Shown here piece after piece: positions 1,522-50,065 of a stretch of DNA of 64,000 bases. The first letter of the stretch is position 1; each line of letters opens with the position of its first letter. The position numbers and the translations under genes are program-made. The stretch spans positions 1-64,000 of IMG/VR virus record IMGVR_UViG_3300017987_000001. One strand, given 5' to 3'. Below the pieces are notes generated by a model that searched no databases, was not told the DNA's origin, and saw nothing but the letters and a program-made list of their open reading frames with translations.

Positions 1522-1523
1522 TG

Positions 1524-2053: not shown

Positions 2054-2065
2054 CAATTCCTCTCG

Positions 2066-2155
2066 TGGCGGAGAGCCGGGGACTTGAACCCCGAAGCCAT
2101 CAAAGATGACCGGCAGATTAGCAATCTGCTGCCTTACCAATTAGGCAAGCTCTCC
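2066..2155 (-). tRNA. tRNA-Ser(GCT)
   Basis: Anticodon arm GCAGA-TTGCTAA-TCTGC, long variable arm, TTCAAGT, G73, CCA. Confidence 0.93.
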
Positions 2156-7513: not shown

Positions 7514-7686
7514 GTGTCACATACCGCCATCTCGTCGGTGTCAGAGACCTCGACCAGCTCGTAGCAGTATTCACACATGACCCGAATACGGAAGCGACTT
7601 CGTTTTCTCGGTCGCATTTCAAGGGGAATCCGGAACCGACGGCTGGTTTTCAGTTCCGGATCCATCTCTTTCGTGAAGACCGCCAT
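7483..7686 (-). CDS. small zinc-ribbon protein
   Basis: CEYC...CDTC; TGATG coupling. Confidence 0.55.
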   Translation of the reverse strand: MAVFTKEMDPELKTSRRFRIPLEMRPRKRSRFRIRVMCEYCYELVEVSDTDEMAVCDTCRRRLAKLD

Positions 7687-17112: not shown

Positions 17113-17321
17113 CAGGCCCTCGAATTCAGGTTGAGGTTCAGCCACATGTCACCCTGTCCGGGGATCGTGGCAAAGCCGTGCGTCGTGGCGACCGTGATCG
17201 ACCGCCCGTTCTTGGACGGCCCGTGTCGCTCGGTCAGGTTGCACCGAATGATGAGAATGTCATCTTCGATCGTCATCCTGACGTTCGTTGGTGGCTTCTT
17301 TTCCTTCCTCGACTCCGCCAT
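17112..17321 (-). CDS. small conserved-type beta-rich protein
   Basis: GPSKNGRSITVATT.G motif. Confidence 0.6.
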   Translation of the reverse strand: MAESRKEKKPPTNVRMTIEDDILIIRCNLTERHGPSKNGRSITVATTHGFATIPGQGDMWLNLNLNSRA

Positions 17322-18150
17322 ACACGTCCCTTCTGATTCCCTTGTTCGTCTCGATCGCACCAAACATCGTATTCGGCGTGACGCCGATACTGTGTGCGAG
17401 ATCCGCAAACGCAGCCAAATCCTTGGGCAGGCACGCTCCGCCGAATCCGTACTTCCCGTCCGGTCCGGGCACCTGCGTGTGCATCTTGTTGACCCACCCA
17501 CTGGTGAGCATGCCCTGCAACACGCGACCGTAATCGATCTTCAGCGTGTCACACATGAGTGCCACTTCGTTCATGAACGACAGCTTCGTCGCGAAGAACG
17601 AATTGCAGGCACACTTGATCATGGCTGCCTCATCGTGCGAGACGATCAGGATAGGTGTATCCGCCTTGACCATGCTGCGGTAGATCGCCCACAGCGCCAT
17701 CGTCGCGAGCGTCTTGCTGTGCTCGTCGGTTCCGATGACCACGCGCGACGGCTTTGCGAAGTCGTCGCGTGCCGTACGCTGCGTAAGGAACTCGGGGTTC
17801 GAGATGAAGCGCTGCGCCGGGTACCTGCCGCGATACCCCTCCACGACGCCCGGAAGCACCGTGGACTTGATCACGATCGTACCGGGTTCACGCCCCTCTA
17901 CTCGCAGCTTCTGAATCTGCTTAACGACTGAATCGAGGATGACGAAATCCATCGAACCGTCGGAACGGGATGGCGTGGGCACGCAGACGAAGACGAACTC
18001 CTGCGTAGCGGCACGCTCGAAGCTCACCTCCGATCGATCCGGCTTGGCATCGTAGATGTAGGGGGTCAGCCCGTGGCGCGCGAAACCGTGCGCTACTGCA
18101 TCTCCTACGAATCCGTGACCGATGATCCCGATGCCCATCTCCATCTTCAT
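17260..18150 (-). CDS. ugd: UDP-glucose/GDP-mannose 6-dehydrogenase (short phage type)
   Basis: GHGFVG Rossmann, CVPTP, KSTVLPG, NPEFL, K..N.F...K..F.NE, GFGGACLPKD; lacks the C-terminal UDP-binding domain. Confidence 0.92.
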   Translation of the reverse strand: MKMEMGIGIIGHGFVGDAVAHGFARHGLTPYIYDAKPDRSEVSFERAATQEFVFVCVPTPSRSDGSMDFVILDSVVKQIQKLRVEGREPGTIVIKSTVLPGVVEGYRGRYPAQRFISNPEFLTQRTARDDFAKPSRVVIGTDEHSKTLATMALWAIYRSMVKADTPILIVSHDEAAMIKCACNSFFATKLSFMNEVALMCDTLKIDYGRVLQGMLTSGWVNKMHTQVPGPDGKYGFGGACLPKDLAAFADLAHSIGVTPNTMFGAIETNKGIRRDVYGGVEEGKEATNERQDDDRR

Positions 18151-26858: not shown

Positions 26859-27374
26859 TTACGACGGGGCAGCTCTGAGGTTGTTGCTGACGGCGATTCG
26901 GCCGTTTCCGGGGCGATACTTCTTGGCGAGGTAGGCAGTGCCGCGCATGTAGGGTTTGTAGATCTCGACCAGTCCGTCACCGGCGAGTCGGGACCAAGCC
27001 TGCTGTGCGAACTCCGGCGTCAGCGTTCTGCCGAAGGGCGCGATGACTGGTCCGTGCCCGATCAGGACATGGTAGTGGATCACATCCCTGCGCTGCAGTT
27101 CCTCCCCGCGAACCCAGCGTAGCCCCGTGTGATGCTTCCAATACGTCTGGCCGTACAGCCGCCTGTTGAGCTTGTGAATCAGTTTGTGGAAAGCGTCCTC
27201 CGCACGACGACAGGAGGGAGTACCGCGAAACGTGAGGTGGCCGTAGAGATCCCACGAATACCGCCGTAGGAACTGGTCCCATGCTTCGATGTACTCATTG
27301 ACGTCAAGACTCACCGACGCTTCCCGATGCAGCTCCGCGAGGAACAACTCTAGACTTTGTGAGGTCTGTGTCAA
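26859..27374 (-). CDS. HUH endonuclease, rolling-circle Rep-like
   Basis: Motif I HLTFR, motif II E.QRR.VIHYHVLI, motif III YLAK. Confidence 0.75.
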   Translation of the reverse strand: MTQTSQSLELFLAELHREASVSLDVNEYIEAWDQFLRRYSWDLYGHLTFRGTPSCRRAEDAFHKLIHKLNRRLYGQTYWKHHTGLRWVRGEELQRRDVIHYHVLIGHGPVIAPFGRTLTPEFAQQAWSRLAGDGLVEIYKPYMRGTAYLAKKYRPGNGRIAVSNNLRAAPS

Positions 27375-28762: not shown

Positions 28763-29425
28763 CTACATCGTCGTGGTGCTGAGACCACACTGGGGGCATG
28801 TCGCTTCAGATGGTAACCTCGGAGCCTGACAGTGAGCGCACTTGATGACCTTGACCTTCACTTCCTCAAGCGTGTCACCTGCGTCAGGCAGTAACTGGAA
28901 CAGTTCTTGGTCGGGTACGAGGATGGGCTTCAGCGCCTTCCGCGCGTTGCCGGACAACTGATCGGCCTTCGCGTGCAACGGGTTGCTGTTGCGCGGAACC
29001 CACCGCCAGCGGATTCGGTACCCGCGCGTCTCGTACCAATCCACGACGGTCCACAAGTCCAAGTTGGCCTTACGTCCGTATTCGCGGGAGCCGCACTTGA
29101 TCGTGTACTCCGAGTCGGAGAAGACCCAGACACGGTACGGCGGATCCTTCACGGATTCGCTGAGCAACTTGTAGTAGTGGTAGCTGAGCGCCTCAGTATA
29201 CGCCGTCAGCTCCATCCTGTTCACGGTTGAGTGCGACCGTCCGCCAATGACGACTGCACGCGCGTGAAGCCGTCTATCGACTAGGAACGCTGAATACCCT
29301 CCCGCGCCCTTCCAGTCCAGCCCACTGCCGTCTCCGAAGAGCAGGAGATCCCACTGTGAGAGCGGGATCTCCTGACTCTTCAGGAAAGCGGCAAGCGGCA
29401 TCTCAGGCGAGGTTTTCTGAGTCAT
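28763..29425 (-). CDS. rnhA: ribonuclease HI with C-terminal zinc ribbon
   Basis: FGDGS, TVNRMEL, SDSEY, KANLDLW, WRWVP, ADQLS; CAHC...CPQC. Confidence 0.9.
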   Translation of the reverse strand: MTQKTSPEMPLAAFLKSQEIPLSQWDLLLFGDGSGLDWKGAGGYSAFLVDRRLHARAVVIGGRSHSTVNRMELTAYTEALSYHYYKLLSESVKDPPYRVWVFSDSEYTIKCGSREYGRKANLDLWTVVDWYETRGYRIRWRWVPRNSNPLHAKADQLSGNARKALKPILVPDQELFQLLPDAGDTLEEVKVKVIKCAHCQAPRLPSEATCPQCGLSTTTM

Positions 29426-30170
29426 GCAGTACGTCGCCGGACAGGATATTGAGCAGCGTATCCCGATTCGGGCGCATCCCTCTCAGCCATCTGGTGAATG
29501 TGCCGACCACCAGTCCTGCGGCAATGTTCGCGCAGTAGATGGTCGACTTCGCGGTACAGGACTGCTGCAGCCCCTCGCCCTCACTGAAGAGCGTGCGCTC
29601 GTAGTAGTCCCGCTCGTCCGTGGCACTCACGGCGAGCACGCGCGCGATTTCGGAAGCCATGCGCGAGTCGATGAACAGGGCGTTGCTGTTGCCCTTGAAC
29701 TTCTCCGCGTACGCCTCCCATATTTCCTTCCGAACCTCCATCTTGTCAACAGCGGATATCACGACGAACCGCTGCGGCTCGGGCGGATCCTCTCCGTCCT
29801 CGACCGGCTCCGGCTCCTCGATCTTGATGTTCGAGATCATCTCGGGCCGGAACTTGTTCTTGGAGGTCTTGAGCGTGACCGCGCTGTTGATCTGGAGACA
29901 CGCCTCGGCCACGGCTTCGACCTTCAGCTTGCCCAGATCGGACTCGATGAATCCCTGAACGGCGAGGTTCTCGACGTCCACGGTGTCGAAGTCGACGATG
30001 CGGATGTTCTCGACACCGATGTGTGCCAGCTGCTTTGCGACGAGCGAGCCGATTGCGCCAACGCCGATCAGCGTGACGCTGGCCGACGCGACCTTCTCCG
30101 GCTTGATGATGTCGCGGTGCCGAATCGCGCGATTGCTAAGGTCCGGCGAATCCGGCGGCGTCGTCGTCAT
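29403..30170 (-). CDS. E1-like ThiF adenylyltransferase
   Basis: GVGAIG nucleotide loop, VDFDTVDVENL..QG, SAVD, IDSRM, SCTAKSTIYC; start could be as far upstream as 30269. Confidence 0.9.
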   Translation of the reverse strand: MTTTPPDSPDLSNRAIRHRDIIKPEKVASASVTLIGVGAIGSLVAKQLAHIGVENIRIVDFDTVDVENLAVQGFIESDLGKLKVEAVAEACLQINSAVTLKTSKNKFRPEMISNIKIEEPEPVEDGEDPPEPQRFVVISAVDKMEVRKEIWEAYAEKFKGNSNALFIDSRMASEIARVLAVSATDERDYYERTLFSEGEGLQQSCTAKSTIYCANIAAGLVVGTFTRWLRGMRPNRDTLLNILSGDVLHDSENLA

Positions 30171-31917
30171 CTCCGAGTTCGACGAGTCCTCCGGTTCTGA
30201 CGGTGTACTCTGCTGTAGCGTGCTCTCCAGCAGTGACTGCGTCTCCTCCATCGTCTGCTCTTGCGGCAAGCTCCGCCTCCACTTCCTTGCGAACTTCGCT
30301 GATGGTGATTACGTCAGTGTCGCGGCGGGCGAGCGCGGCGTCCGTTACGTCCGCTTTCTTCTCGTCTGCCGTCTTGGTGGCGTCATCGGGTTCCGCGAAA
30401 CCGGGCGCCCCGTTCGACCCCGAGCTGCATGTTGCTGCGGATACGGCTCCCGTCGCGCCGGTTTCGGCCTTCTTCTCGGACTTGTTCGCGTCCTTCGGAT
30501 TGCCCAGACACAGTTCGAGGTCTGCGGCTTCCTCGTCCTCGCGCAGGTCGATGATGTGCCCCACATTGGTGAGACGGGTGATCTTCAGCGGAGCGTACTC
30601 GCCATCGACGAATCGCCATGTGATCTCGCCGTATGCGACCGGCGATTCGGTGGCGATATCGCACAGGCTGTCGATGTCGTCCTCTTCCGAGGCATACACG
30701 TCGATGCCTTCGGCGTACTCGTACCACCCGAAGTCGGTGATGACGATGGTGCCGTTCTTGTAGCGCTCGATCTGCCAGATCTGCTCTACGCTTTCGCTGA
30801 CGAGCTTCTGCGCAGGATCATCTTCACCAGACGCGAGACGATGGCGCCCACCCCAGTCAGGAATCTCCTCCTGATCGAAGATGGAGCGGGAAGCGACGCG
30901 ACGGCGGGCGGACGAAAAGGACGAATCCGAGTTCGCCGGTGTCTTGGTCTCGAATCCCTCCGTCCCCTCATTGTCGCCACGATTCCACTGGTTGCGCCAC
31001 TCGCGCCAGTCCTGCTCGTCCATGTAGTGGCCGTAGTGCCTGCCACCGTAGTTGTCGTAGCAGCCGCCGTAGCTTCCGCCGCCGTGAACCGTGACGGACG
31101 AGCCGGACGTGTACGAGCGCGTGAGGATGTTCGCCTGATACTCCTCCTCCCACGCCTCGTAGTCCTCCTGCGTCACGCCGAGGAACGGCGGGTTGATGTC
31201 CAGCTGCACCTTCAGATCGGCCTCTCGACCTCCGCCGAAGACTTCGCCGACAATACCCTGCTCTTGGATGTTGTAGCGGAACTTGGCCTTGAACTCCCCG
31301 CCCTTCGCGAGGATGGCCATGATCGACCAGTCGCTCCCACCGAACACGTCGCGGAACGTAGCCACGTCCGTGCTGCTGGGACTGGCCGAGTTGCCCGGAT
31401 GCGTGTGCAACCAGATCCGGAGCACCTCCGACGGGTGCCATCCGACCTTGACCATGTCGTCGAGGTACTTGTTCAGCGCATCGTCGTCGAACTCGACCGA
31501 CGCGGCGCTCGCCTTCTGCTTGATGGTCAGGAAGTCGGCCACGTACAGAAGCTCGCTGCGATAGCTGAGGCCGAAACCGCTGATCTCGGTGGATCCCCGG
31601 TCCCTGAACCACTGCAGCTTCGCGTATGCTCGCGGACCGAGACGCAATGCGCCCGGAACGTTCGGGCGCGTGGCAACCTCCTTGCGCTCCGGCGTCTTCC
31701 ACGAGCTGATGGCCGAGTGCTGGCTCGCTGCGGAGCCACTGCTTCCACGCGACGTCTGCGCTGCGGCAGACGGTGTCGACGCGGACGAATTCGCCGGTAC
31801 GCTTGACCGCCCCTGATTGGGGTGGCCAAGCGTCGGCGTGTTACCGGCAAATCCTGCGGACGGGTTACTGATGATATTCTCCTCTCGTCGCCTTCTTCGA
31901 CGCCTTCGCCTACCCAT
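30136..31917 (-). CDS. JAB/MPN (JAMM) isopeptidase with long disordered extensions
   Basis: TEISGFG catalytic Glu; WLHTHPGNSASPSSTD (HxH-x7-S-x2-D); ATG overlaps the E2 stop. Confidence 0.88.
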   Translation of the reverse strand: MGRRRRRRRRREENIISNPSAGFAGNTPTLGHPNQGRSSVPANSSASTPSAAAQTSRGSSGSAASQHSAISSWKTPERKEVATRPNVPGALRLGPRAYAKLQWFRDRGSTEISGFGLSYRSELLYVADFLTIKQKASAASVEFDDDALNKYLDDMVKVGWHPSEVLRIWLHTHPGNSASPSSTDVATFRDVFGGSDWSIMAILAKGGEFKAKFRYNIQEQGIVGEVFGGGREADLKVQLDINPPFLGVTQEDYEAWEEEYQANILTRSYTSGSSVTVHGGGSYGGCYDNYGGRHYGHYMDEQDWREWRNQWNRGDNEGTEGFETKTPANSDSSFSSARRRVASRSIFDQEEIPDWGGRHRLASGEDDPAQKLVSESVEQIWQIERYKNGTIVITDFGWYEYAEGIDVYASEEDDIDSLCDIATESPVAYGEITWRFVDGEYAPLKITRLTNVGHIIDLREDEEAADLELCLGNPKDANKSEKKAETGATGAVSAATCSSGSNGAPGFAEPDDATKTADEKKADVTDAALARRDTDVITISEVRKEVEAELAARADDGGDAVTAGEHATAEYTVRTGGLVELGDDDDAAGFAGP

Positions 31918-33649
31918 TGTTGTCGGCCGGAGGCCCGAAGCCTGTTCCTGCGTTTGCGCCCGGATCGATCGCGCCGATGTACTGCGGTGCTTCGCTGCTC
32001 GGCAGCTCTTCATAGCGACCGTTTGCGCCCAGCCGTCGCAGCATATGACCGTACGCACACTGGCGCGTGGGGTCTTCGCAGCACGGCTCGTTGTCGTTGA
32101 CGGCGTTTTCGAGACAGCCAGCACAGAAGTACACGTCGCTGCAGTCGTACATCTCGTTTACGTCGAACGACTCACTGCACGTCGCGCACATGCGCGTGCC
32201 GGTTGGTGCTGCGATCAGTGTTTCTACGTTGAAGTTCAGCGGGTTGACCTCATCCTGCGGGATCGTCGGGATCGAGTCGATCGTGATTCCCCGTCGCGGT
32301 GGGATGTTCACGTAGTTCGGGTGATTGGAATCCTCACCCCGCCCGGTCTCGGGCTGCTCGGGCGGCGCGAAACCGGTACCGGCTTCGTTGCGCGCCTGAT
32401 TCTGCTGCGCCCGCTGCGTGATCTCGCGATGCCATGGATGACGCGTGGCGGCAAGCCAGTTGCCAAGCGGACAGTACTGCGAGAAGTCTGCGCAGCATGT
32501 TCTGCGATCGTCCGCACGCCGCTGCACACACGCCGTGCAGCGCCATACGCTACGACACTGAATCGCATCATGTGCGTTCACGCTCGTGCCGCACTCCCCG
32601 CATTCTATGGATTCGCGAATTGCACAACCGGTCGTGCCGAACCCGTCACAGTCCTCGCAGCCCTCGTTGCGCATATCTTCGTCGGTGCGGCAGTTGCCAC
32701 AGATCGACACGTCGCCGATATCGCAGTAGTGCGAACAGTCGCGACACACCGCGTTCTCGCAGACCGCGCACGTGTACATGTCGTCCGGGTAGCCGCGATG
32801 GCCACAAACGATACACGTGTGCGTGCGCCGGTGATTTGCAGGCGGGGGCGCCGTGCCCACATTTGGGTTACGCCGCTTGAACTCCTTCGCGAAGTACTCC
32901 AGTCGCAGGAACGGCGACCTGTGGTTGTACGTTCGAAGTACCTGATCGATGAGGATGAAGAAGGTGAACAGGTCGCCTCGCTTCAGTGCATCGCCGATCT
33001 GCAGCTCGCCGTCGCCCTCGCACATCGACGCGTCCCGCACGTGCGGGTGACAGATCGTTGAGTGATCGGGAGCCAATAGTGGGGTCTCGGCGTAGACGCG
33101 GTACGGGCGCACCACGCCACGCAAGACCTGATTCATGTTCAGCTTGACCATGTACCGGCCGAACTCGACATTGAGTTGATTAACCTCACAGTAGAGTGCA
33201 ACCGGACGGGTGAGCACGACGAGGTACCAGCCGTCGATCGAACGCTCCATCCTCCAACCGTCGAAATCGCCGGTCAGCCGCTGAAGCATTCGCGTCATGC
33301 TGGTCTTTGTGATCGGAGTCAGCTGCTTATCGTCCTTGTTGTCCGTCTTTGTGATCGTCCGACGACATGACTCGACCTGATTCTGCAGGAACGCGTGATG
33401 ATTGCGCAGAAGCGTCAACCAGTCACGGATCTCGTCGAGAAGCACGCACGCCGAGTTGACCTCACCTTTCCCGGTGTAGAGAAAATCTGCGCGGTCGCAG
33501 ATCGCCATGTACTCTTGGCTCTCCTCCACGAGGGACTGAATCATAACCTTGAGGTCTTCTGGGCGACGGGCGTTCCTGCGGCGCAGCACATCCTGCAGAA
33601 TTTCCGCAGCTTGTGCCGTGTCCGTCAGTGTCTCCATCGTTTCAGACAA
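31910..33649 (-). CDS. E2-like (UBC fold) conjugating protein with C-terminal Cys-rich zinc domains
   Basis: HPHV-x4-MCEGDG (HPH plus catalytic Cys), L.TYN..SP; many downstream CxxC; TTG start after GGAGG. Confidence 0.75.
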   Translation of the reverse strand: MSETMETLTDTAQAAEILQDVLRRRNARRPEDLKVMIQSLVEESQEYMAICDRADFLYTGKGEVNSACVLLDEIRDWLTLLRNHHAFLQNQVESCRRTITKTDNKDDKQLTPITKTSMTRMLQRLTGDFDGWRMERSIDGWYLVVLTRPVALYCEVNQLNVEFGRYMVKLNMNQVLRGVVRPYRVYAETPLLAPDHSTICHPHVRDASMCEGDGELQIGDALKRGDLFTFFILIDQVLRTYNHRSPFLRLEYFAKEFKRRNPNVGTAPPPANHRRTHTCIVCGHRGYPDDMYTCAVCENAVCRDCSHYCDIGDVSICGNCRTDEDMRNEGCEDCDGFGTTGCAIRESIECGECGTSVNAHDAIQCRSVWRCTACVQRRADDRRTCCADFSQYCPLGNWLAATRHPWHREITQRAQQNQARNEAGTGFAPPEQPETGRGEDSNHPNYVNIPPRRGITIDSIPTIPQDEVNPLNFNVETLIAAPTGTRMCATCSESFDVNEMYDCSDVYFCAGCLENAVNDNEPCCEDPTRQCAYGHMLRRLGANGRYEELPSSEAPQYIGAIDPGANAGTGFGPPADNNG

Positions 33650-33658
33650 GGTGCCTCC

Positions 33659-33707
33659 AAAAAAAGAAGAGAAGAGCGCCCGCCCGGCCGAAGCCGAGCG
33701 GGCGCCC
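33659..33707 (-). terminator. intrinsic terminator between the Ubl and E2 genes
   Basis: GGGCGCCCGCTCGGC-TTCG-GCCGGGCGGGCGCTC hairpin followed by TTCTCTTCTTTTTTT. Confidence 0.7.
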
Positions 33708-33737
33708 TGTACACATCAGACGACGTGCGTCAGACGA

Positions 33738-34046
33738 CTAACCCGCGAAGCCGGGGAGGTCCGCTCCCGCGACCTTGTGCGGGCTGATGGTGACCCTGTC
33801 ACCGTCCTGCAGGACGAAGTCGGCGGGCATCCGGCCGCCCGTGAACCGCTCGCAGCGGATCACGTACTTGGCCGGATCCTGCGTGCCCATGTGGCGCTCC
33901 CAGAGCGTCTTGACGGTGGAGCCTGCGGGCAGCGAGACGAAGTCCGCGAAGCCCGTGTCGGAGGTGGACGTCAGGAAGATGCGCATCTCGCCTTCGGGAG
34001 CCGGGGCCATCTCGGGGGCGGCGGGGGTCTCGTTCTGATCGGTCAC
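33738..34046 (-). CDS. ubiquitin-like beta-grasp protein (ThiS/MoaD-like) with C-terminal extension
   Basis: MRIFL...GSTVK.L...Y.IR...DFVLQDGDRVTISPHKVAGA-DLPGFAG; GTG after GAAAGG. Confidence 0.85.
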   Translation of the reverse strand: MTDQNETPAAPEMAPAPEGEMRIFLTSTSDTGFADFVSLPAGSTVKTLWERHMGTQDPAKYVIRCERFTGGRMPADFVLQDGDRVTISPHKVAGADLPGFAG

Positions 34047-34104: not shown

Positions 34105-35502
34105 TTACGGCATAAACGGGGAATTGAGGCGGTCCTTCTTGACGATAATCGTCTTACCCCACGGAACGATGCTCCGTTCAAACTCGTCCGTGGTCATACA
34201 GTCCTCGGGCAACAACCACAGTGTGGGGAAGCCGTCTGGACTCTTGTCGGGACGGGACGCGGTATACGTGTCCCACCATGACTGGCCGCGCTCTTTCAGG
34301 ATGTTTGCCTTGTACGTGGCGATGGTACCGTAGCCGTCCGTGTAACCGACTATGTAGTGTGGCCTCGGGTGCATTTGTCGAATATGCATGAGGGCACTAC
34401 TGTAGTCGGTCCCACCGCGTCCAAAGAATCGCTCAAGTGGTTCGCCCGGGCGATATGGGTGAACCTTCGCGACACGCGCGTCACTCTGTACGACAGTGAT
34501 CGTCGCGCCCCGCGCACACATGCCCCGAAGTTCGGGGTCAACGAGCTTGAGTTCTTCTGCTCCCATGGACCCGCTGGTATCGATCAAGAATGCTACGCGC
34601 AATCCGCCGGTCCACGTATAGCCGCGATACGCTGGATGGCGCCGCGACGGTCGTCTACGTGTTTCGGTCCGGATCTGATGACTGTGCTGGGTTTCCATAG
34701 CGCGCAAGTGTCTGTACCACGGAACTACCGCGTCCCGCTTGGACGCCTTCATGAGTTGCTCGTGATCAGCACCGAGAGTGCCGCGCCATTTCTTGTGCAC
34801 CTCATCGCCGAACATCTTGAGTGCTTCGGACACCGACGTGATGATGTTCCTCGTGCGTTCGTCTGCGAACGTACCGTCGCTCTCACTGAGGCGGAGCACC
34901 TCACTCATGAGATACGGTACGTTCTTGCCCGGGAATCCATCCGACTGACCTGCAGTGCCAGTCGACAAGGCGGAGTTGGGTGACTGGAATTTCGGAAGCT
35001 TCAGCTTGCCTTCATTGACGAGCGTCTGGATGACTTCTGCATACTGCATTGACGTCATGCCCATCGGCACGCCCTGAAGGTGCTGTAATTGAAAACCTAC
35101 CAACCCCTCTTGCGACAAGTGCGGACTGGGATGCTTCTGGTTGACGTAGACGTCCATCGCTGCGGTTGCGATCTCTGGACCGAATCGATCAATCAGGAAT
35201 CTCCCATAGCTGGTGAAGTGCCCCTCAATGATGTGTGCTGCCTGATGTTCGAGGACTTCCAGCCGTGCTTCGAAGCTCAGCTCCTTCATAATTGGCCAGT
35301 ACAGCGTGATCTGCAATTGGCCATCGACGACGTCACAGCCCGCGTGAATCGGATAGGATCCACTGTAGCCGATCGGTGCCGATGTAGCGACGATATTGAC
35401 GTTGTGCAGGACGTAGCACAGGTCATGCCTCTTCGTCGTTACGAGATAGTAGAGGAGTTCGCTGAGCCAGTTACCGTCACCGCTGTGCTGCTCTGCGTCC
35501 AC
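34105..35502 (-). CDS. DUF2201-type metallopeptidase-like plus vWA domain protein
   Basis: LEHQAAH (degenerate HExxH), RRPSRR, IDTSGSM MIDAS, GRGGTD, TDGYG. Confidence 0.85.
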   Translation of the reverse strand: MDAEQHSGDGNWLSELLYYLVTTKRHDLCYVLHNVNIVATSAPIGYSGSYPIHAGCDVVDGQLQITLYWPIMKELSFEARLEVLEHQAAHIIEGHFTSYGRFLIDRFGPEIATAAMDVYVNQKHPSPHLSQEGLVGFQLQHLQGVPMGMTSMQYAEVIQTLVNEGKLKLPKFQSPNSALSTGTAGQSDGFPGKNVPYLMSEVLRLSESDGTFADERTRNIITSVSEALKMFGDEVHKKWRGTLGADHEQLMKASKRDAVVPWYRHLRAMETQHSHQIRTETRRRPSRRHPAYRGYTWTGGLRVAFLIDTSGSMGAEELKLVDPELRGMCARGATITVVQSDARVAKVHPYRPGEPLERFFGRGGTDYSSALMHIRQMHPRPHYIVGYTDGYGTIATYKANILKERGQSWWDTYTASRPDKSPDGFPTLWLLPEDCMTTDEFERSIVPWGKTIIVKKDRLNSPFMP

Positions 35503-36734
35503 TAGCCGAGTACCTTCTCGAACTTCTTGACGAAGTCGTGGTACACTTTGCCCATCTGCGCGACGACATCCGATTTCTTGAAGACGTCCATGATCGGACT
35601 GCGCACGAATCTGGGCGCGCGATACACCGCATCGCACAACGACGATACGATGTCCGCAGCGTTGTTCAGCATCAGCACCTGACAGAAGCCGGTGAATCGC
35701 TCTCCCGCTTCCGGGTACTGGGTCGTGAACGTGTTGTCGGACTGTGCGATCACGCGAATCACATCGAGCTGCGTCGCACCAATGTATCCGCGTGCCTTGG
35801 TCCCACCACTGAACCAGCGCTGAACACGCTCTAGTTGCGCCGCGAACTGCTCCACGCTACTTCCGAGCAGCTCACGACCGAGAATAGGCACCTTGTCCGG
35901 CTGGTACCCACTCTGAAGGAACGTCAGCAACGGTGGCGAGATCGTATCGTCAATGACCGCTCGTGCGCTCTTGACGATGTTCGCGGCCGATTCGCCAGCG
36001 GCCCGTTGCGCCTCGACATGCACCGCCAACCCCATCCAACCACGCGGTGTGAGCTGGTTGAAGAAGCTGTCGTGGTTGAGGATGAACTGGTAGACCGTCG
36101 GCTTCATGATGATCGACCAGACGGCCAGCAGTTCAGCCTTCTCCGGTACGACGATGTACGGGTGCAGTCGTTCTTCGATCGAGTGGCACAGCTCGGCCTC
36201 AACCGTCGTGTAGTCGGCGGTCAGTGGGTTGCCGGTTGCCACGAGGATGCAGTTGGGGCTTACCTCGCGGTTATTGAACTTGGCCTTTCCCGCCGTCGAG
36301 TCGACGATCTGTCGCAGCTGGTTGAGCACCTTCTTGCTGGCCGTGGGAAGCTCGCTGATCTCCAGCAGCAGCGCTTCCTGTTCGAAGATCGGAAGCATCG
36401 CAGCTTCCATGTTCTCGGTGACCTTCTTGGTGGTCCCGTCCGGATTCGTGACAATCTTGCCCGCTGGGTCGGGAACGCCAAGGTTGTCATCGAAGAGTTG
36501 TGCGTCGGGATCCCAGCGACAGTACGGTATGCCGAGGTCGTCGGCGATGCACGTACACGTTGTCGACTTACCGTCTCCCGACTCACTGAGCATGATCGGG
36601 ATCTTGTTCACCCGTTCGCGCTTCGGCTGGCTCAGCAGGTACTTCGCGTGATTCGTGATCGCTCGGCGAGCGAACCCGAGGCTCACTTGGTACTTGTTCT
36701 GCTGATTCCAGACCGTCGTGAGCAGCCTGCCCAT
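35502..36734 (-). CDS. MoxR-like AAA+ ATPase
   Basis: Walker A SESGDGKST, atypical Walker B LLEISE, VATGNP sensor 1, arginine finger EERL; partner of the vWA gene. Confidence 0.8.
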   Translation of the reverse strand: MGRLLTTVWNQQNKYQVSLGFARRAITNHAKYLLSQPKRERVNKIPIMLSESGDGKSTTCTCIADDLGIPYCRWDPDAQLFDDNLGVPDPAGKIVTNPDGTTKKVTENMEAAMLPIFEQEALLLEISELPTASKKVLNQLRQIVDSTAGKAKFNNREVSPNCILVATGNPLTADYTTVEAELCHSIEERLHPYIVVPEKAELLAVWSIIMKPTVYQFILNHDSFFNQLTPRGWMGLAVHVEAQRAAGESAANIVKSARAVIDDTISPPLLTFLQSGYQPDKVPILGRELLGSSVEQFAAQLERVQRWFSGGTKARGYIGATQLDVIRVIAQSDNTFTTQYPEAGERFTGFCQVLMLNNAADIVSSLCDAVYRAPRFVRSPIMDVFKKSDVVAQMGKVYHDFVKKFEKVLG

Positions 36735-37482: not shown

Positions 37483-39303
37483 ATGCACCGAAGGGAAGGC
37501 GTGATGGTAATCACTGAAGCACAGACGCCGCAAGCGCCGAAGTCTGTGGCGGAAGCGATCACCTCGCTTGCCCATCAGTACACGGAGCACACAGTCGACA
37601 CCTTGGTGCCACTGTTGCCCCTTCTGACCTTAAAGGGCGAGCCGTACACGCTCAGTCACCACGCGCCGTTCGAGCCGCTCTTCGATTTGAGCTTGCCCAA
37701 GCGGACGACGTGGAAGACCGGACGGCAGGTCTCGAAGACGACAGGGCTATCGTCGCAGTCGGTCCTTCACTGCGCGATTCAGCCCTACTTCGCCACCCTT
37801 TTCGTGGCTCCACGCTTTGAGCAGATCCGCCGCGTCTCGGCGAACTACGTGAAGCCGTTCATTGAGAACAGCATACTGGACAAACTGATCGCGGGGAAAT
37901 CCGTCGAACGGTCTGTCCTTCAGAAGACCTTCCGCAACGAGGCGCGGATGTACTTCAGCTTTGCGTTCCTCGACGTCGACCGCATTCGTGGTCTGTCCGT
38001 CGACTGCGTGAAGTACGACGAGATCCAAGATATCGATACTGACTTCATCCCGATTATCAAGGAGTGTATGTCCGCGTCGCGCTATGGAATCGAAATGTTC
38101 TTCGGCACGCCCAAGACTCTCGACAACACCATTCAGGTGCTGTGGGAGCGCTCATCGCAGGCCGAATGGGTCACACGATGTCAGGCGTGCAACCACGAGA
38201 ATATTCCGGGGCTTGAGTATCACCTTCTCAAGATGATCGGCCCGCGCGGGCCGGTCTGTGCCAAATGCGGACGTGACATCCAGCCTAGGACTGGGCGCTG
38301 GATACACGCTAACCCCGATGAGCTTCCGTTGAACGTCGGGTACCATGTTCCCCAGATCATCATGCCGATGCACTATGAGGATCTGGACGAACCGTGGAAG
38401 CTACAGGAACATCCTACCGAGAAGTGGTTGGATCTGCTCGGTAAGCGGGAAGGCCGCAACAACTACACTGAGGCCAAGTTCCTGAACGAGGTTTTGGGCG
38501 AGTCATGTGATGTCGGCACCAAACTGGTTACGCTCACCGACATCAAACGCGTCGCCACGTTGAACAAGAACACCGAGAAAGACGCACTTCGCAGCATCCA
38601 TAACTACCTGTACCGGGCCATGGGCGTTGACTGGGGCGGCGGCGGTGAGGACGAAATCTCCTTCACTGTCGTCACCGTCGTCGGCATGAACCCACAGAGC
38701 GGTAAGATGGAGTGCATCTTCGCGAAACGACTACACTTGGGCTACTCCCATATCGAGGAAGCACAGGAGGTGATGCGCCTGTTCAAGGCGTTCCAGTGCC
38801 ACTACTTCTGCCACGATTACGGAGGTTCGGGATCTGTCCGTGAGGCCCTGATGATTCAATCCGGGTTCCCCATAGAGAAGATCCTGCCCTTCATGTACGT
38901 TCGCGCGACCGTGAACAAGATGGTCGAAGCCAAGCGTCCCGGCGGCTTCAACCAACGCGCCTACTACACGGTCGACAAGGCGCGATCGCTGGTCCTGCAG
39001 GCTCAGTGCATCAAGACCCAAGCCATTCAGCTGTTCAAATACGACTCTGAATCGCAGGAAATCCTACACGACCTACTCGCTCTCATTGAGGCCAAGAGCG
39101 AGCGCCCCGGTGCCGCAGACGTATTCCTCATCACGCGCAATGCGAAGATGCCCGACGACTTCGCACACGCTCTGAATTTCGCCTGCATCGGCATCTGGCA
39201 CGTCCACAAAGCGTATCCAGACCTGACAAAGCTCACCCAAATCAAGCTTACGCCCGAGCAGCGGAACTTCGCTGACCCGGTCGTACAGGACTGGAACGAG
39301 TAG
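37483..39303 (+). CDS. terL: terminase large subunit (GpA-like)
   Basis: GRQVSKTT Walker A, RIRG...YDEIQD Walker B, GTPK, CxxC pairs, MGVDWG nuclease, DDFAHA; likely start 37501 or 37504. Confidence 0.9.
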   Translation: MHRREGVMVITEAQTPQAPKSVAEAITSLAHQYTEHTVDTLVPLLPLLTLKGEPYTLSHHAPFEPLFDLSLPKRTTWKTGRQVSKTTGLSSQSVLHCAIQPYFATLFVAPRFEQIRRVSANYVKPFIENSILDKLIAGKSVERSVLQKTFRNEARMYFSFAFLDVDRIRGLSVDCVKYDEIQDIDTDFIPIIKECMSASRYGIEMFFGTPKTLDNTIQVLWERSSQAEWVTRCQACNHENIPGLEYHLLKMIGPRGPVCAKCGRDIQPRTGRWIHANPDELPLNVGYHVPQIIMPMHYEDLDEPWKLQEHPTEKWLDLLGKREGRNNYTEAKFLNEVLGESCDVGTKLVTLTDIKRVATLNKNTEKDALRSIHNYLYRAMGVDWGGGGEDEISFTVVTVVGMNPQSGKMECIFAKRLHLGYSHIEEAQEVMRLFKAFQCHYFCHDYGGSGSVREALMIQSGFPIEKILPFMYVRATVNKMVEAKRPGGFNQRAYYTVDKARSLVLQAQCIKTQAIQLFKYDSESQEILHDLLALIEAKSERPGAADVFLITRNAKMPDDFAHALNFACIGIWHVHKAYPDLTKLTQIKLTPEQRNFADPVVQDWNE

Positions 39304-46469: not shown

Positions 46470-48137
46470 CTACATTTTAGCCGTCAGCTTGTCCAGATCA
46501 ATGGCCTTGATCTGATCGAGCCAGTAATCGGCTGCACGTCCGGCGCTCCAGTCACCGATGTACGTGAAGACCTGATCGGAGAAGCCGCCGATCTGGTACA
46601 CGTCCGGATGATTCTCCGGCATCTGGTTGCTGGTGTTGGCGTACACGTTAATGTTCACCAACTGCGCCTTCGGGTTGCGCTTCTTGTAAGCCGCCCACGC
46701 CGTGGCCATCCCAGTGGCTCGGGAGCCATAGATGGATCCGAACTCGGCGTACGGCGTCTCGACCCACGCCTCGTTGTCCGAGACGTAGATCACCAGATTG
46801 CCCTTGTGCTTCTGGGCGTTCAGGTGCTTCAGCGCGACGGAGCAGTCCGTGCCTCCACCATGGAGCGCCAACTTGCGCGCGTTGGTCATGACCGAATCGC
46901 GCGGGTTGGCGGCAACCCGATGCACGCGCGTGTCGAACGGTACGATCGTCGTGGCGTCCGGGTTCTTGCGCAGCAGCGACGCTGCGACAAGCCCGGCCAC
47001 ATCCACGGCGAGCACCTTCGACGTTGCGCCTCCGCGCATGCCCGTGACAGGCCACGTCATCGATCCGCTCGTGTCAATGCAGACCGCGACGTTACCTTCG
47101 ATCGCCGGAACGTTCTCGCACGCGACTTCCATCGCGTCCTGTAGGGCGTTCGTGATCTTGGTCGGCGCCGAGCCTTCGTTCATCTTGAAGGCCATGAGGA
47201 TCTGGTACGGGAAGACCCGCGCCTTCCGGATCACGTCCGGGTCGCGCAGCTTCGCCGCGATCAGATCCACCATCGCAGGGTCGTTGTAGACCCCGTGACG
47301 GAGCGCCGTCTGCAGGTTCATCCTGCAGAAGTGCCAGCCGCCCTTCTTGAACAGTTCGCCCCATTCCGCCGTCGTCAGCGGGGAGGGGAGGCCGTCGAGC
47401 CGCTGGAACGGAACGGCCGGTACTTCCATGGCCAGTCCGCTCTCGGGCATCTTCGCACCGTTCGCAACCACCTGCTTCATGGCCTTGAACGCTTCGAACT
47501 GCTGAACCAGCTCGGGCAGCTGACTCAGATACTTCGACACCGGATCCCCGTCCTTCTTCAGGAAGTACCTGTAGATGGCCGAGTGCTGCGGCGTCGCGGG
47601 CTTCGGGTGCATCATCGTGATGACGTCCTTCATGGACGGCTTCCCGATGTCCCATCTGAAGAGCATCTCCGGGGACGTCCGGTCGAGCATCTGCTGGAGC
47701 AGACGTCGCGGACGGTGACCGATGTTGTCGCGACCGGTCACGTTGCTCCAGAGGATCTCGAAGAACCTCAGGAACATCTTCCCATTGTCGATGATCTTCG
47801 GGAACGCCTTCTCCAGATGGCGCATTCCCTCATTTCCGAGAGTCGTGAGGTAGCACGCCAGCAACGCTGGCATGTCCTTCATGTACCCTCGCTGACGGGC
47901 GAAGACTGCGATCTTCGCCACTAGTTCAGCTGAGACCTTCGGGAGCAATCCCACGATGGCCTTCAGCTGGTCCTCGGCTGAGCTGTAGTACGCATCACCG
48001 AACGTGCACGTCGCAGCCATCTGCGCCAGTGCCAGTTCGGGCGACAATGCGTACGCAGCTCCCCCAGCCTCGTTGGCTGCGGTTGCCGCCGGTGCAGCGA
48101 ACCCACCTCGCTGCGATCGAAAGACTCGGTTACTCAT
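46470..48137 (-). CDS. rsr: Ro60/Rsr TROVE-domain RNA-binding protein with vWA domain
   Basis: NEAGG.AY, RQRGYMKDMPA, HPKP, RMNL, ARVFPYQ, IDTSGSM, GGGTDCS, SDNE. Confidence 0.93.
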   Translation of the reverse strand: MSNRVFRSQRGGFAAPAATAANEAGGAAYALSPELALAQMAATCTFGDAYYSSAEDQLKAIVGLLPKVSAELVAKIAVFARQRGYMKDMPALLACYLTTLGNEGMRHLEKAFPKIIDNGKMFLRFFEILWSNVTGRDNIGHRPRRLLQQMLDRTSPEMLFRWDIGKPSMKDVITMMHPKPATPQHSAIYRYFLKKDGDPVSKYLSQLPELVQQFEAFKAMKQVVANGAKMPESGLAMEVPAVPFQRLDGLPSPLTTAEWGELFKKGGWHFCRMNLQTALRHGVYNDPAMVDLIAAKLRDPDVIRKARVFPYQILMAFKMNEGSAPTKITNALQDAMEVACENVPAIEGNVAVCIDTSGSMTWPVTGMRGGATSKVLAVDVAGLVAASLLRKNPDATTIVPFDTRVHRVAANPRDSVMTNARKLALHGGGTDCSVALKHLNAQKHKGNLVIYVSDNEAWVETPYAEFGSIYGSRATGMATAWAAYKKRNPKAQLVNINVYANTSNQMPENHPDVYQIGGFSDQVFTYIGDWSAGRAADYWLDQIKAIDLDKLTAKM

Positions 48138-48263
48138 TCTGCCCTCCTCTCGAATAGCAGACAAAGCACGCGCTCGAAATGAGCGCATGGCGAACCGGGT
48201 CCAACATATAGTAACGCGATATGGGCCTGTTTTAACCCCGGCCTAGGGCGTTCCACGGGTGTC

Positions 48264-48291: not shown

Positions 48292-48623
48292 TAGGGACTG
48301 TCGGCAAAAACGATGGTCTTCGCGTTGACCCATTTCCGCCGCAGCAGGAAGGTTCGGAGGGCGTCGTAGTCCGACGGTTTGAAGAGGCGGTGGAAGTGCC
48401 GCACGATATCCTGATACTTCTCCCGGGTCTCCGGCCGGAGCGCCCCGCGCGTGGTTTCACGGAGCTTGGTCATGTGTGCGGTCAGCTTCAGGACCGGCCC
48501 CTTCAGCGGAGCAAGGGATGGCACGTCGTCGTAGATGCGCAGGTCGGCGAGCAGCTTGCAGATCAGCCGATCGTCGATGAGATAGATGTCGTGATGCTTT
48601 ACTGCTCGTCCTGCTTTATGCAT
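48288..48623 (-). CDS. hypothetical protein
   Basis: Last gene of the GT operon; start uncertain. Confidence 0.5.
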   Translation of the reverse strand: MHKAGRAVKHHDIYLIDDRLICKLLADLRIYDDVPSLAPLKGPVLKLTAHMTKLRETTRGALRPETREKYQDIVRHFHRLFKPSDYDALRTFLLRRKWVNAKTIVFADSPY

Positions 48624-50065
48624 GGGCGCACCACCGGAATCTGTACGTCTGTCCCGACCGGCAGGAAGTGATCCTGCGAGATCTGTCGGAACAGGTCTGT
48701 ATACGTCTCCGCCTCCTTGTCCAGCTGCTGTGCCGGGGCGATGAAGAAGCCCGGGTGGGGGTAGTGTCGACCCCCCGCTGTACGGTAGATCCTACCACAG
48801 ACAGTAGCTGGAGCCACGGCGTTGGTCATCATGCGCAGCCAGTACGCGGAGGTCGGCTTGGCTCCCTGCTCGAACCAGAACAGGTGCCCGGACGTTCCTG
48901 CCGCGATCTCCTTGATGTCCTTCACCAGCTCACCGTCCCGCCGCACGATCGGGCTATCATCCCCGCTCTCACGAATCAGCGAGACCATGGAGTCGTACCA
49001 CTCCCCCTCGGGACCGTGGAGGCAGAAGACGTGCGACGGCAATGACGGCGGCTTGGCCACGACGTTCAGCCCACGCTCGATGGTCCCCTCCTTGTAGTAG
49101 GAGAAGATCGAGTCGATGACCTTGTCGGGCGTGATCATCGCCAAGCACTTCGGGAGCGACTGCTTGCCAATCTGTACGATGTTCTGACACTTCGAAGAGC
49201 CACCAGCCAGCTTCGACTTCCAGCAGCCCTTGCCCTTGCAGCAAGATAGCTGATCCTGCGTGTGTAGAAACCGGTGCTCGACGTAGTTGTCGTCGGCCGG
49301 GATCTGCCAGTGCGGGTCGCCGACCCGCATGTTGAAGAGCCGGTTCTCGTTGTTGTACGCCTCCCACCACCATGGCTCCCGACCCCCTGCTATGACCACG
49401 CAGGGCTTGTTGAAGGCCGCAGCGATATGCATGGCCGCCGTCACCGCACAAACCACACCCTCGGCATGATAGATCAGCCGGATGAACTCGCGCAGACCGG
49501 TCTTCTTGACCATGTAGTGCGCGACCCCGTCGATCTTCTCGTGCATGATGTGGTTCTTGCTACCTCCGCCGCACTGCACCCAGTCGATCTGGTCCTTCGT
49601 AGCAGTGATCACATCCTGCCAGTACTTCCGTGCCCAGATCTTTGTTCTGAAGTCCGTCTTGCCGCCGGAGAGGAAGAGCCAGTACGGAGGCTCGATGACT
49701 GGGTTCGTCTTCTCTTCTAGGGATAGGTGCAAGTCGGGCCTGAAGTCGGTCAGCTTGATGTCCGTCTTCAGTTTGTTGTTCATGTGCTCGATGAAGCCCC
49801 AGAGGAAGTGCTTCTTCGCTTGGTTCGACTTGTGGATCAACGGGTAGTGCGCGACGAACTGCTGCCCCTTCGGTGCCGGGCGCTTCGCCTTCTGCGCGTG
49901 CTTGATGTACGGGTTGTTCCTGAAGACATGCTCGGAGCCGGGAGAGACCGTCATCGTCACGTCGAACTTCCCCGGGTGGCGGAGCGCGAGATCGCGGATG
50001 GCTGCCGACAGTACGACGATGTCACCGGGACTCTGGGTGTTACGGACAATCAGTGGGGAACCCAT
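48599..50065 (-). CDS. GT9-like (heptosyltransferase-type, GT-B) glycosyltransferase with extra C-terminal domain
   Basis: SPGD...SAAIRDL, PDLHLS, TAAMHIAAAFNKPCVVI.GGRE. Confidence 0.8.
   Translation of the reverse strand: MGSPLIVRNTQSPGDIVVLSAAIRDLALRHPGKFDVTMTVSPGSEHVFRNNPYIKHAQKAKRPAPKGQQFVAHYPLIHKSNQAKKHFLWGFIEHMNNKLKTDIKLTDFRPDLHLSLEEKTNPVIEPPYWLFLSGGKTDFRTKIWARKYWQDVITATKDQIDWVQCGGGSKNHIMHEKIDGVAHYMVKKTGLREFIRLIYHAEGVVCAVTAAMHIAAAFNKPCVVIAGGREPWWWEAYNNENRLFNMRVGDPHWQIPADDNYVEHRFLHTQDQLSCCKGKGCWKSKLAGGSSKCQNIVQIGKQSLPKCLAMITPDKVIDSIFSYYKEGTIERGLNVVAKPPSLPSHVFCLHGPEGEWYDSMVSLIRESGDDSPIVRRDGELVKDIKEIAAGTSGHLFWFEQGAKPTSAYWLRMMTNAVAPATVCGRIYRTAGGRHYPHPGFFIAPAQQLDKEAETYTDLFRQISQDHFLPVGTDVQIPVVRPCIKQDEQ

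Follow-up and report, generated by a model that had tools for sequence, protein, structure and literature searches.

[quoted passage not shown] The Ubl has a conserved Gly followed by up to nine non-conserved residues, and in the Type II system the JAB enzyme BilC cleaves BilA after that Gly (PMC10557695). Bil conjugates its Ubl onto phage tail proteins (PMC11601603). Its E2s lack the N-terminal HPN-type motif and have a conserved His after the Cys, while the E1, BilD, has IAD, AAD and CYS domains and a zinc site. The Caldiarchaeum-type "eukaryote-like" operons, also reported in Planctomycetes, Actinobacteria and Acidobacteria, combine a Ub, an E1, a UQ_con E2 with a classical His-Pro-x motif before the Cys, a separate small RING and an Rpn11-like JAB that trims the Ubl precursor (PMC4197634, PMC5654768). 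Type II CBASS fuses E2 and E1 in Cap2, which acts with the JAB protein Cap3 and has a CD-NTase as its substrate, and Bub (6E/DUF6527) is defined by a DUF6527-type E2 and the BubCD architecture.

Ubl components have also been found next to other machinery. Ternary conflict systems of the vWA-MoxR FtsH type contain an embedded Ubl-E2/E1/RING/JAB set (Kaur et al. 2020, PMC7159879), and a MoxR plus peptidase-vWA pair is described in jumbo phages, where it has been proposed to act in virion assembly (Iyer et al. 2021, PMC7824862); the text of the latter survey has no match for "Ubl" or "E1-like", and its two mentions of ubiquitin are incidental. In lambdoid and T1 phages the tail-assembly proteins TAPI (a Ubl with a conserved C-terminal Gly) and TAPK (JAB-NlpC) form a pair inside a tail gene cluster, without E1 or E2 (Iyer et al. 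2006, PMC1779556).

A four-gene Ubl operon in a large phage

The window analysed is a stretch of 64,000 nucleotides, positions 1 to 64,000 of the IMG/VR record IMGVR_UViG_3300017987_000001. A reading of the sequence alone had proposed a complete Ubl, E2-like, JAB and E1 operon at 29403-34046, and this observation is confirmed: four co-directional open reading frames lie there on the minus strand, and public gene calls on identical contigs map to the same positions. The E2-like and JAB genes overlap by 8 nt, JAB and E1 by 35 nt or more, and E1 and the following RNase H gene by 23 nt, while the Ubl gene is separated from the E2-like gene by about 100 nt. The possibility that the contig is host chromosome, which had been put forward as grounds for rejecting the proposal, was examined and the contig is a phage, probably of Planctomycetota. 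It encodes TerL at 37483-39303 (phrog_675, 1e-54), a tail-fibre-like C-terminus at 53112-56297, a Dda helicase, SbcC and six tRNAs, and it was assembled twice independently at about 208 kb, as IMG/VR UViG records of 207,857 and 207,878 bp.

The conservation of the operon in related phages, a survey suggested with the original proposal, shows that the set is more than a chance association. The whole block recurs in other phage contigs (L008, L009, L017, L018 and P0002) at 31-68% protein identity, and the order MoxR-vWA-Ubl-[terminator]-E2-JAB-E1-RNaseH is kept in at least six divergent phages. The phage-type E2s form one side of a split with 100/98 support. The same Ubl-E2-JAB-E1 order occurs in a Planctomycetaceae MAG (L001) and in other MAG and metagenome contigs (L002, L014, L015 and L016), so that the resemblance to Planctomycetota operons suggested by the sequence-only reading is real. 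That the operon is a conserved core block of a phage lineage, linked to a MoxR-vWA pair, was not noticed in that reading, nor were the terminator after the Ubl gene, the GF[AG]P motif and the missing E1 arginine described below.

Directly upstream of the Ubl in every phage copy lies a metallopeptidase-vWA protein of 465 aa (DUF2201_N plus DUF2201 by Pfam; 34105-35502, minus strand), with synteny seen in L009, L008, L018 and P0002, and this is preceded by its partner, a MoxR-like AAA+ ATPase of 410 aa (phrog_1297 ATPase, 4.4e-8; 35502-36734, minus strand). The peptidase-vWA architecture is that of the jumbo-phage pair, and the protein may belong to the same functional unit as the conjugation genes, although this link rests on synteny alone. 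The linkage of MoxR and vWA proteins to a Ubl-conjugation set is shared with the vWA-MoxR FtsH conflict systems, but no FtsH, EAD1 or caspase effector is present here. An RNase H with a C-terminal zinc ribbon (Pfam RNase_H, 3.3e-8; 28763-29425, minus strand) overlaps the E1 stop codon and sits downstream in every phage copy, with synteny in L009, L008 and L017; its membership in the system is uncertain.

Between the Ubl and E2-like genes a scan located an intrinsic-terminator-like hairpin of 16 bp, 13 of them GC, followed by a U-tract and then GGAGG (33673-33708, minus strand; fold z = -4.8). Equivalent hairpins of 15-16 bp with U-tracts occur at the same place in L008, L009 and L018, while the hairpin is absent from the cellular operon L001.

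Catalytic signatures of the four proteins

The Ubl precursor (33738-34046, minus strand, 102 aa) ends in KVAGADLPGFAG and is a ThiS/MoaD-type beta-grasp candidate. In the family alignment an invariant Gly, here that of HKVAG, is followed by 1-9 variable residues, here the tail ADLPGFAG. The proposal that JAB cleaves after the Gly of VAG fits this alignment and the Type II BilA/BilC precedent. Five of seven family members hit Pfam ThiS (best E 5.4e-5), with SAMP2 and Ub-Mut7C also appearing, but the window's own copy gives no Pfam hit and its fold was not modelled, leaving the beta-grasp assignment undecided.

The E2-like protein (31910-33637, minus strand, 575 aa) contains CHPHVRDASMCEGDG and comprises an N-terminal helical hairpin, an E2-like core at aa 105-268 with HPH at 197-199 and Cys206, a Cys-rich zinc region at about aa 273-400, and a second CxxC module at about aa 495-545. 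The core has no Pfam, NCBIfam, PADLOC or PDB sequence match and defines a family of at least 1,756 cluster representatives. The expected Cys a few residues after an HPN-type motif is present: HPH-x6-C is invariant in 62 family members, with His rather than Asn in the third position, and further invariant positions are G, G and Y. The UBC fold, named in advance as the feature on which the E2 assignment would stand or fall, is only weakly supported. An AF2 model of high confidence (pLDDT 94.5) has the order a1, beta-meander, HPH loop, Cys, a2-a4, with one or two extra strands, and the top three PDB Foldseek hits are E2s (Cdc34, UFC1), but with E-values of 0.1-0.4 and TM of 0.29-0.35. The only named Atlas neighbours are a Planctomycetota UQ_con cluster (TM 0.53), E2-CBASS (0.44/0.53) and UFC1. 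These matches do not settle membership of the UBC superfamily, and thioester formation with the Ubl was not assayed.

The sequence-only reading further proposed that the Cys-rich region is a built-in E3 or substrate adaptor, which is not supported by any test. It holds a regular array of CxxC pairs (8-10 in short-type members) with alternating 4- and 3-residue spacers. Pfam profiles give only sub-threshold and mixed leads, all above E 5e-4 (Siva, ANCHR B-box, FYVE, RING), LIM is a further sub-threshold lead, and Atlas scores are below 0.8, so that the region could not be assigned to RING or any other family and the presence of a cross-brace, eight-ligand zinc site that binds E2~Ubl, as in RING-type E3s, is left undecided.

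The JAMM/MPN+ peptidase (30136-31917, minus strand, 593 aa) contains HTHPGNSASPSSTD with an upstream Glu in GSTEISGFG. A poly-Arg N-terminus precedes the JAB domain at about aa 95-265, followed by a phage-specific conserved C-terminal domain at about aa 350-490 and an acidic tail ending GFAGP. The full E...HxHx7Sx2D zinc site is present, with Glu111, His171, His173, Ser181 and Asp184 invariant in seven homologues. The Pfam Prok-JAB match (E 1.7e-4, score 21.9) is below the cut-off of 25, but PADLOC JAB models hit the protein, and in the PDB the family profile best matches Rpn11 (3.2e-4), with the catalytic residues aligned.

The E1 (29403-30170, minus strand, 255 aa) is a minimal ThiF/MoeB-type protein with no CYS, IAD or UFD domains and no rhodanese. 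It matches Pfam ThiF at 1.5e-26 and 93.5 bits against a gathering cut-off of 28.1, and has an invariant GVGAIG loop, fitting the GxGxxG loop of the Rossmann-type fold, and invariant Asp, Lys and Asp residues. Profile searches of the PDB hit the active adenylation domains of Uba6 and Uba1 at 1e-18, as well as ThiF, MoeB and, distantly, BubCD (4.6e-10). The candidate catalytic Cys lies in QQSCTAKST, where an invariant Cys-Thr (SCTAKS/ECTSRG) precedes the IYxAxIAAG helix in the crossover-loop region; MoeB Cys187 and ThiF Cys184 would be the equivalent residues, but these sequences were not aligned here and the role of the Cys is left undecided. The ATP-contacting Arg of the (S)NLxRQ motif, which is near-universal, is absent: the family reads N-[LI]-x-[VAT]-Q-G where the Uba6 active adenylation domain has NLNRQ, so adenylation cannot be taken for granted. 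This loss could suggest a degenerate or repurposed relic, in which the E1 cannot adenylate and the proteins act only as binding or scaffold modules, for example with the MoxR-vWA chaperone, and the window's DUF2201 peptidase motif likewise reads HQAAH where L009 has HETLH. We consider this unlikely, as every other catalytic residue of E1, E2 and JAB, and the Ubl Gly, is invariant across phage and cellular members down to about 30-40% identity, a pattern that indicates selection for chemistry rather than decay.

Comparison with described systems and proposed function

By their defining features the operon is not Bil, Bub, CBASS or the Caldiarchaeum type. In contrast to Bil, it is encoded by the phage, the E2-like protein has HPH before the Cys and fused zinc modules, the E1 is a single domain of 225-255 aa, and no PADLOC model hit the E2 or the Ubl. 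Bub is ruled out as there is no Pfam hit of any kind on the E2. The E1 hits PADLOC Cap2 "E1-E2" models at 1e-15 and the conserved C-terminal tail on the E2 is reminiscent of the conjugated CD-NTase tail, but the E1 and E2 are not fused, a separate Ubl is present, and no CD-NTase or effector was found among the neighbours. The classical His-Pro-x motif, the zinc-finger component and a JAB whose closest solved relatives are Rpn11/CSN5 are shared with the Caldiarchaeum type, yet there is no UQ_con match and no separate RING gene, the Ubl is ThiS-like rather than ubiquitin-like, and the E1 is minimal. The TAPI/TAPK pair is likewise a phage-encoded Ubl and JAB, whereas here the full set lies outside the tail genes.

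A sulfur-carrier system, in which the ThiS-like Ubl would be adenylated by the ThiF-like enzyme and converted to a thiocarboxylate to thiolate a cofactor, nucleoside or tRNA and the JAB would only mature the carrier, as in CysO/Mec+ or TtuB-type pathways, is the alternative suggested by the ThiS hits, by the minimal E1, whose nearest NCBIfam models are ThiF and MoeB (all below their cut-offs), and by the several tRNAs of the phage. It is unlikely, as the sequence-only reading had argued: no thiamine or molybdopterin genes, and no rhodanese, cysteine desulfurase, ThiG/ThiH, MoaE or PP-loop thiolase, were found among the neighbours scanned, and an E2-like protein with an invariant Cys and large zinc modules, which has no role in known sulfur-carrier pathways, sits in the operon in every copy examined where that position is preserved.

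The interpretation offered with the original observation, that the virus carries its own ubiquitination-like machinery, is partly supported. We favor, with a probability of roughly 0.7, a phage-encoded Ubl-conjugation cascade of a previously unnamed family. In this view the Ubl is made as a precursor and the JAMM peptidase removes the tail after the invariant Gly (HKVAG|ADLPGFAG); the homodimeric E1 adenylates that Gly and may also form a thioester on its crossover-loop Cys; the Ubl passes to Cys206 of the E2-like core, 7 residues after HPH, and from there to a lysine on target proteins, the fused zinc modules probably helping to choose the target; and the same JAMM enzyme can reverse the tagging. 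The analysis itself demonstrates the gene set, the conserved catalytic residues, the operon order in cells and phages, the terminator after the Ubl gene, and long-term retention in one phage lineage beside a MoxR-vWA pair, whereas every chemical step, the cleavage site and the targets are inferred, there being no biochemical evidence of any kind. Targets and timing are not known, and expression was not examined. The position next to TerL and the MoxR/peptidase-vWA pair, together with retention in all relatives, suggests a role in the phage's own program, in virion or host-protein modification, rather than a sporadic accessory gene, although this too is inference.

A real cascade acting in conflict is a possible but less likely alternative. 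It might counter host Ubl systems of the same family, the enlarged, Arg-rich JAB stripping host tags from phage proteins, or exclude competing phages as Bil does by tagging tail proteins. Homologous operons are present in a Planctomycetaceae MAG, with four copies in the one MAG and one of them directly next to a tyrosine integrase, and the phage JABs carry lineage-specific additions. No test bears on this reading, and neither the tagging of host defense proteins nor the countering of host Ubl defenses, both proposed at the outset, is supported by any test; the block behaves as a conserved core module of the lineage rather than a variable accessory gene, and its MoxR/peptidase-vWA neighbors have been proposed to act in virion assembly.

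More tentatively, a lineage of large phages, probably of Planctomycetota, may run its own tagging system, with a eukaryote-style E2 motif, an Rpn11-like DUB and an E2-fused zinc "E3", as a core and long-retained part of the infection program. The shared GF[AG]P motif and the conserved Gly or Gly-Pro ends of E2 and JAB would then mark a second layer, such as docking onto a common partner or CBASS-like self-conjugation of the enzymes, and this would be the first viral ubiquitin-like system in bacteria and a new branch of the E2 superfamily. The conserved tails on E2 and JAB and the loss of the canonical E1 arginine are at present unexplained, as is the GF[AG]P motif, which recurs in three of the four proteins; the E2-like protein carries GFAPP and GFGPP motifs, and its C-terminal residue is Gly.

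The operon and its phage setting

The four genes occupy positions 29403-34046 and are all encoded on the minus strand, and gene calls on identical public contigs place the Ubl at 33738-34046 (102 aa), the E2-like protein at 31910-33637 (575 aa), the JAB at 30136-31917 (593 aa) and the E1 at 29403-30170 (255 aa). From these coordinates the E2 and JAB genes overlap by 8 nt and the JAB and E1 genes by at least 35 nt, while the E1 gene overlaps the following gene, an RNase H with a C-terminal zinc ribbon at 28763-29425 (-), by 23 nt. The sequence-only reading had described these four ORFs, and every motif that it had listed is present: KVAGADLPGFAG at the Ubl end, CHPHVRDASMCEGDG, HTHPGNSASPSSTD with an upstream Glu, and QQSCTAKST. 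Its observation is confirmed, whereas its interpretation of the operon as ubiquitination-like machinery carried by a virus is supported only in part.

That the contig might be host chromosome rather than phage had been named in advance as grounds for rejecting the finding, and this possibility was considered and rejected. The window contains TerL at 37483-39303 (phrog_675, 1e-54), a Dda-like helicase, SbcC, a protein with a tail-fibre-like C-terminus, and a cluster of six tRNA genes at 327-2155 (-) comprising Met, Trp, three Ser (GGA, CGA, GCT) and Lys. The same sequence is listed in IMG/VR as UViG contigs of 207,857 and 207,878 bp, two assemblies of ~208 kb that came from different samples. 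The phage also encodes, at 2954-5056 and 6144-7193 (-), 17260-18150 (-) and 48599-50080 (-), an SbcC/SbcD-like nuclease pair, a UDP-glucose/GDP-mannose dehydrogenase and a family 9 glycosyltransferase. A small protein at 26859-27374 (-) has a rolling-circle Rep-like domain (Pfam REP_ORF2-G2P, 28.1 bits against a cut-off of 27.8), which here lies inside a large phage genome. A Ro60/TROVE-vWA-like protein is encoded at 46470-48188 (-) (Pfam vWA_Ro60, 1.5e-8; phrog_850 "RNA-binding protein", 1.7e-35); a partner Y-like RNA was not sought.

Four predicted components of a proposed conjugation cascade

The E1 scores 93.5 bits on Pfam ThiF against a cut-off of 28.1, and a profile built from six family members hits the active adenylation domains of Uba6 and Uba1 at 1e-18, followed by UBA5, ThiF, MoeB and BubCD. 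The Gly-rich loop, the Asp of VDFD, Lys83 and Asp142 are invariant, as is a Cys-Thr pair in the region where MoeB and ThiF carry their crossover-loop Cys. One departure stands out, in that the Arg of the near-universal NLxRQ motif is V, A or T throughout this family. A relationship to the ThiF systems of PRTRC mobile elements was considered and rejected, as the hit scored 27.9 bits against a cut-off of 144.75. The JAB scores below its Pfam cut-off; however, Glu111, His171, His173, Ser181 and Asp184 are invariant in seven homologues, and the family profile aligns these residues to the active site of Rpn11, its best solved relative at 3.2e-4.

The Ubl of the window has no family hit of its own in Pfam, PHROGs, PADLOC or NCBIfam, although five of seven aligned homologues hit Pfam ThiS, with a best E of 5.4e-5. 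The alignment shows an invariant Gly followed by 1-9 variable residues, which read GA, GS, GAA and GAL...S in the short-type operons from metagenome-assembled genomes (MAGs) and metagenome contigs, and GA, GAEKPGFLKR, GAEAAGFAA and GADLPGFAG in phages. Chambers et al. describe the same pattern for Type II BilA, where the JAB enzyme BilC cleaves after that Gly (PMC10557695).

The E2-like protein has no hit in Pfam, PHROGs, PADLOC or NCBIfam, and sequence searches of the PDB with profiles of the family gave only noise (IST1, CheZ) or nothing. A profile search of 1.84 billion cluster representatives nevertheless found 1,756 relatives at E of 1e-3 or better and 1,135 at 1e-10 or better, most of them about 350 aa in length. 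In 62 aligned cores G, H-P-H, C, G and Y are invariant, with the signature THPHVxxxxLCEGxG. The absence of a UBC fold was another outcome that had been set beforehand as counting against the operon. A first AF2 model of the whole N-terminal 275 aa, based on a 4-sequence alignment, was too poor to use (pLDDT 57), but with the 62-sequence alignment AF2 gave a confident model (pLDDT 94.5, pTM 0.87) in which the element order is helix, beta-meander, HPH loop, Cys and then three helices, which is the UBC order with extra strands. Foldseek against the PDB ranks Cdc34, UFC1 and Cdc34 again as the top three and also lists the CBASS CdnG-E2, but at E 0.1-0.4 and TM 0.29-0.35 these matches are not significant on their own, and Foldseek against BFVD returned only unnamed uncultured-phage proteins. 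The ESM Atlas search agrees: apart from unnamed clusters of its own family, the only named neighbors by features are UQ_con, UFC1 and E2-CBASS, while by structure they are a Planctomycetota UQ_con cluster (TM 0.53) and an E2-CBASS cluster (0.44/0.53). We read this as a divergent E2-like fold that is probable but not proven.

C-terminal to the core lies a regular array of CxxC pairs, 8-10 of them in short-type members, with alternating spacers of 4 and 3 residues, to which the phage proteins add one or two copies of a CxxC-x11-C-x5-CxxC-x10-CC-x6-C module. Domain searches of this region gave only sub-threshold and mixed matches (Siva, ANCHR B-box, FYVE, RING, LIM and Prok-RING_2), with low-score leads alone from the Atlas. 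The region is very probably zinc-binding, but these matches do not settle its kinship with RING-type E3 domains.

Distribution, proposed mechanism and known systems

Conservation of the operon in related phages had been put forward as a further point to examine, and two forms were found. In the first, the order Ubl (71-74 aa), E2 (about 355 aa), JAB (about 195 aa) and ThiF (about 225 aa) occurs in a Planctomycetaceae MAG and in other MAG and metagenome contigs (loci L001, L002, L014, L015 and L016). The Planctomycetaceae MAG SOY_31_metabat_283 alone has four separate loci with the E2-like gene (L010-L013), and in L013 the gene, at 6520-7848, lies next to Planctomycete-typical PSD1/PSCyt2 genes and directly follows a tyrosine integrase, which suggests carriage on integrative elements. 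The Atlas places the family in Planctomycetota (a cluster of 2,546 members) and in Uroviricota (clusters of 335, 258 and 72 members).

The second, phage-type form occurs in the window phage, in the contig that encodes the homologue P0002, and in the phage contigs L008, L009, L017 and L018. These share the block MoxR-like AAA+, peptidase-vWA (DUF2201), Ubl, E2, JAB, E1 and RNase H, with TerL on the other strand, at 31-50% E2 identity; the RNase H follows the E1 gene in every phage copy (L008, L009, L017). In a maximum-likelihood tree of 62 E2 cores, rooted at the midpoint only, the phage-type sequences, which do not include the homologue P0005, lie on one side of a branch with 100/98 support. 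A tblastn search of the E2 core against 50,697 GenBank phage records found no match, and a scan of IMG/VR with a short-type profile likewise found nothing.

The simplest account of a set that keeps every catalytic residue across about 30% identity is a working cascade. In this view the JAB would trim the Ubl after the invariant Gly, the E1 would adenylate it, and the Ubl would move to Cys206 of the E2, which, helped by its zinc modules, would transfer it to lysines, with the JAB reversing the tagging. The analysis itself extends to the genes, their conserved residues and their order, and each of these chemical steps is inferred from them, none having been demonstrated here. A sulfur-carrier role is unlikely, as no sulfur-transfer partner was found among the neighbors scanned and the E2-like protein is present in every copy examined.

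The evidence does not choose between use of the cascade for the phage's own assembly or host take-over and use in conflict with host or rival-phage systems. Two observations lean towards a core role, namely that the block is retained across the lineage and that it is linked to the MoxR/peptidase-vWA pair, which Iyer et al. proposed as a virion-assembly chaperone in jumbo phages (PMC7824862). Two others keep a conflict role possible: homologous operons occur on a probable integrative element in Planctomycetaceae, and Kaur et al. describe vWA-MoxR conflict systems with embedded Ubl cascades (PMC7159879).

By their defining features the operon is not Bil, which has a different E2 signature and a multi-domain E1, nor Bub, with its DUF6527 E2, nor CBASS, with its Cap2 fusion and CD-NTase, nor the Caldiarchaeum-type operon, with its UQ_con E2 and separate RING. 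It shares the Gly-plus-tail Ubl with Bil, and the His-Pro-x...Cys E2 signature and an Rpn11-like JAB with the eukaryote-like type. Literature searches found no report of a complete Ubl cascade in a bacteriophage, although a prior description of the cellular family, for which Burroughs et al. 2011 and 2012 would be the most likely place, is not excluded. An Asgard-virus preprint reports only E1-like genes, and in the survey of 224 jumbo phages (PMC7824862) no mention of Ubl or E1-like proteins was found and the two mentions of ubiquitin are incidental. Prokaryotic Ubl-conjugation operons are already known, and what sets this one apart is that it is phage-encoded, conserved in a lineage and built on an unannotated E2 family.

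In bacteria, Ubl conjugation has so far been shown only as a host defense (CBASS, Bil) or stress system (Bub), and viruses with their own ubiquitin machinery are known mainly from eukaryotes. The operon is, by its gene content, a complete cascade on the virus side, and its E2-like protein belongs to a family with more than 1,700 cluster representatives. If it is active, it gives a tractable four-protein system for asking what a phage gains by tagging proteins, it adds a new E2 branch with a eukaryote-like HPx-Cys signature and a fused zinc module, which bears on how E2-E3 coupling arose, and it suggests that Planctomycetota and their mobile elements are a reservoir of ubiquitin-like chemistry.

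Sequence features conserved among the phage copies

Comparison of the phage copies also brought out features that the sequence-only reading had missed. A 15-16 bp GC-rich hairpin with a U-tract, followed by GGAGG, lies between the Ubl and E2 genes in all four divergent phages for which this spacer is available, at 33673-33708 (-) in the window and at about 5361-5395 in L008, 7915-7951 in L009 and 2752-2795 in L018, with fold z-scores of -3.9 to -4.9. In the cellular operon L001 there is no such spacer, as the called Ubl and E2 genes meet at position 2935. The hairpin may be a leaky terminator that sets the ratio of Ubl to enzymes, and it suggests that the Ubl is transcribed with the MoxR/vWA genes and in excess over the enzymes; this is an inference, transcription not having been examined. 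At the junction between the JAB and E1 genes, the E1 reading frame is open for 113-140 nt upstream of the JAB stop codon in three phages (30136-30269 in the window, 8606-8745 in L008 and 11211-11323 in L009), in the +1 frame relative to JAB. Whether this is a long gene overlap or a site of frameshifting was not tested, with reads or otherwise, and both proteins are low-complexity and acidic there.

A short motif, [GAPTS]-G-F-[AG]-[PGE], occurs six times in the Ubl tail, E2 and JAB of the window (30139-34046) and only once elsewhere in 77,004 residues of six-frame ORF segments, that hit being in a plus-strand ORF that overlaps the SbcC gene on the opposite strand. The motif sits at equivalent positions in L008, L009, L017 and L018. 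The protein ends are conserved as well, with all four phage E2s examined ending in Gly and all four phage JABs in Gly-Pro, while the short-type E2s have a conserved tail, G[VL]G[EQ]AxV[PS]A, that aligns with the phage GFGPP tail. Phage JABs further carry a poly-Arg/Lys N-terminus and a conserved extra domain of about 140 aa of unknown fold, for which Atlas searches of the JAB C-terminal domain gave only low-score leads. Finally, the predicted metallopeptidase motif of the DUF2201 peptidase-vWA protein at 34105-35502 (-) reads HQAAH in the window but HETLH in L009, so that the catalytic Glu may be replaced by Gln in this phage.
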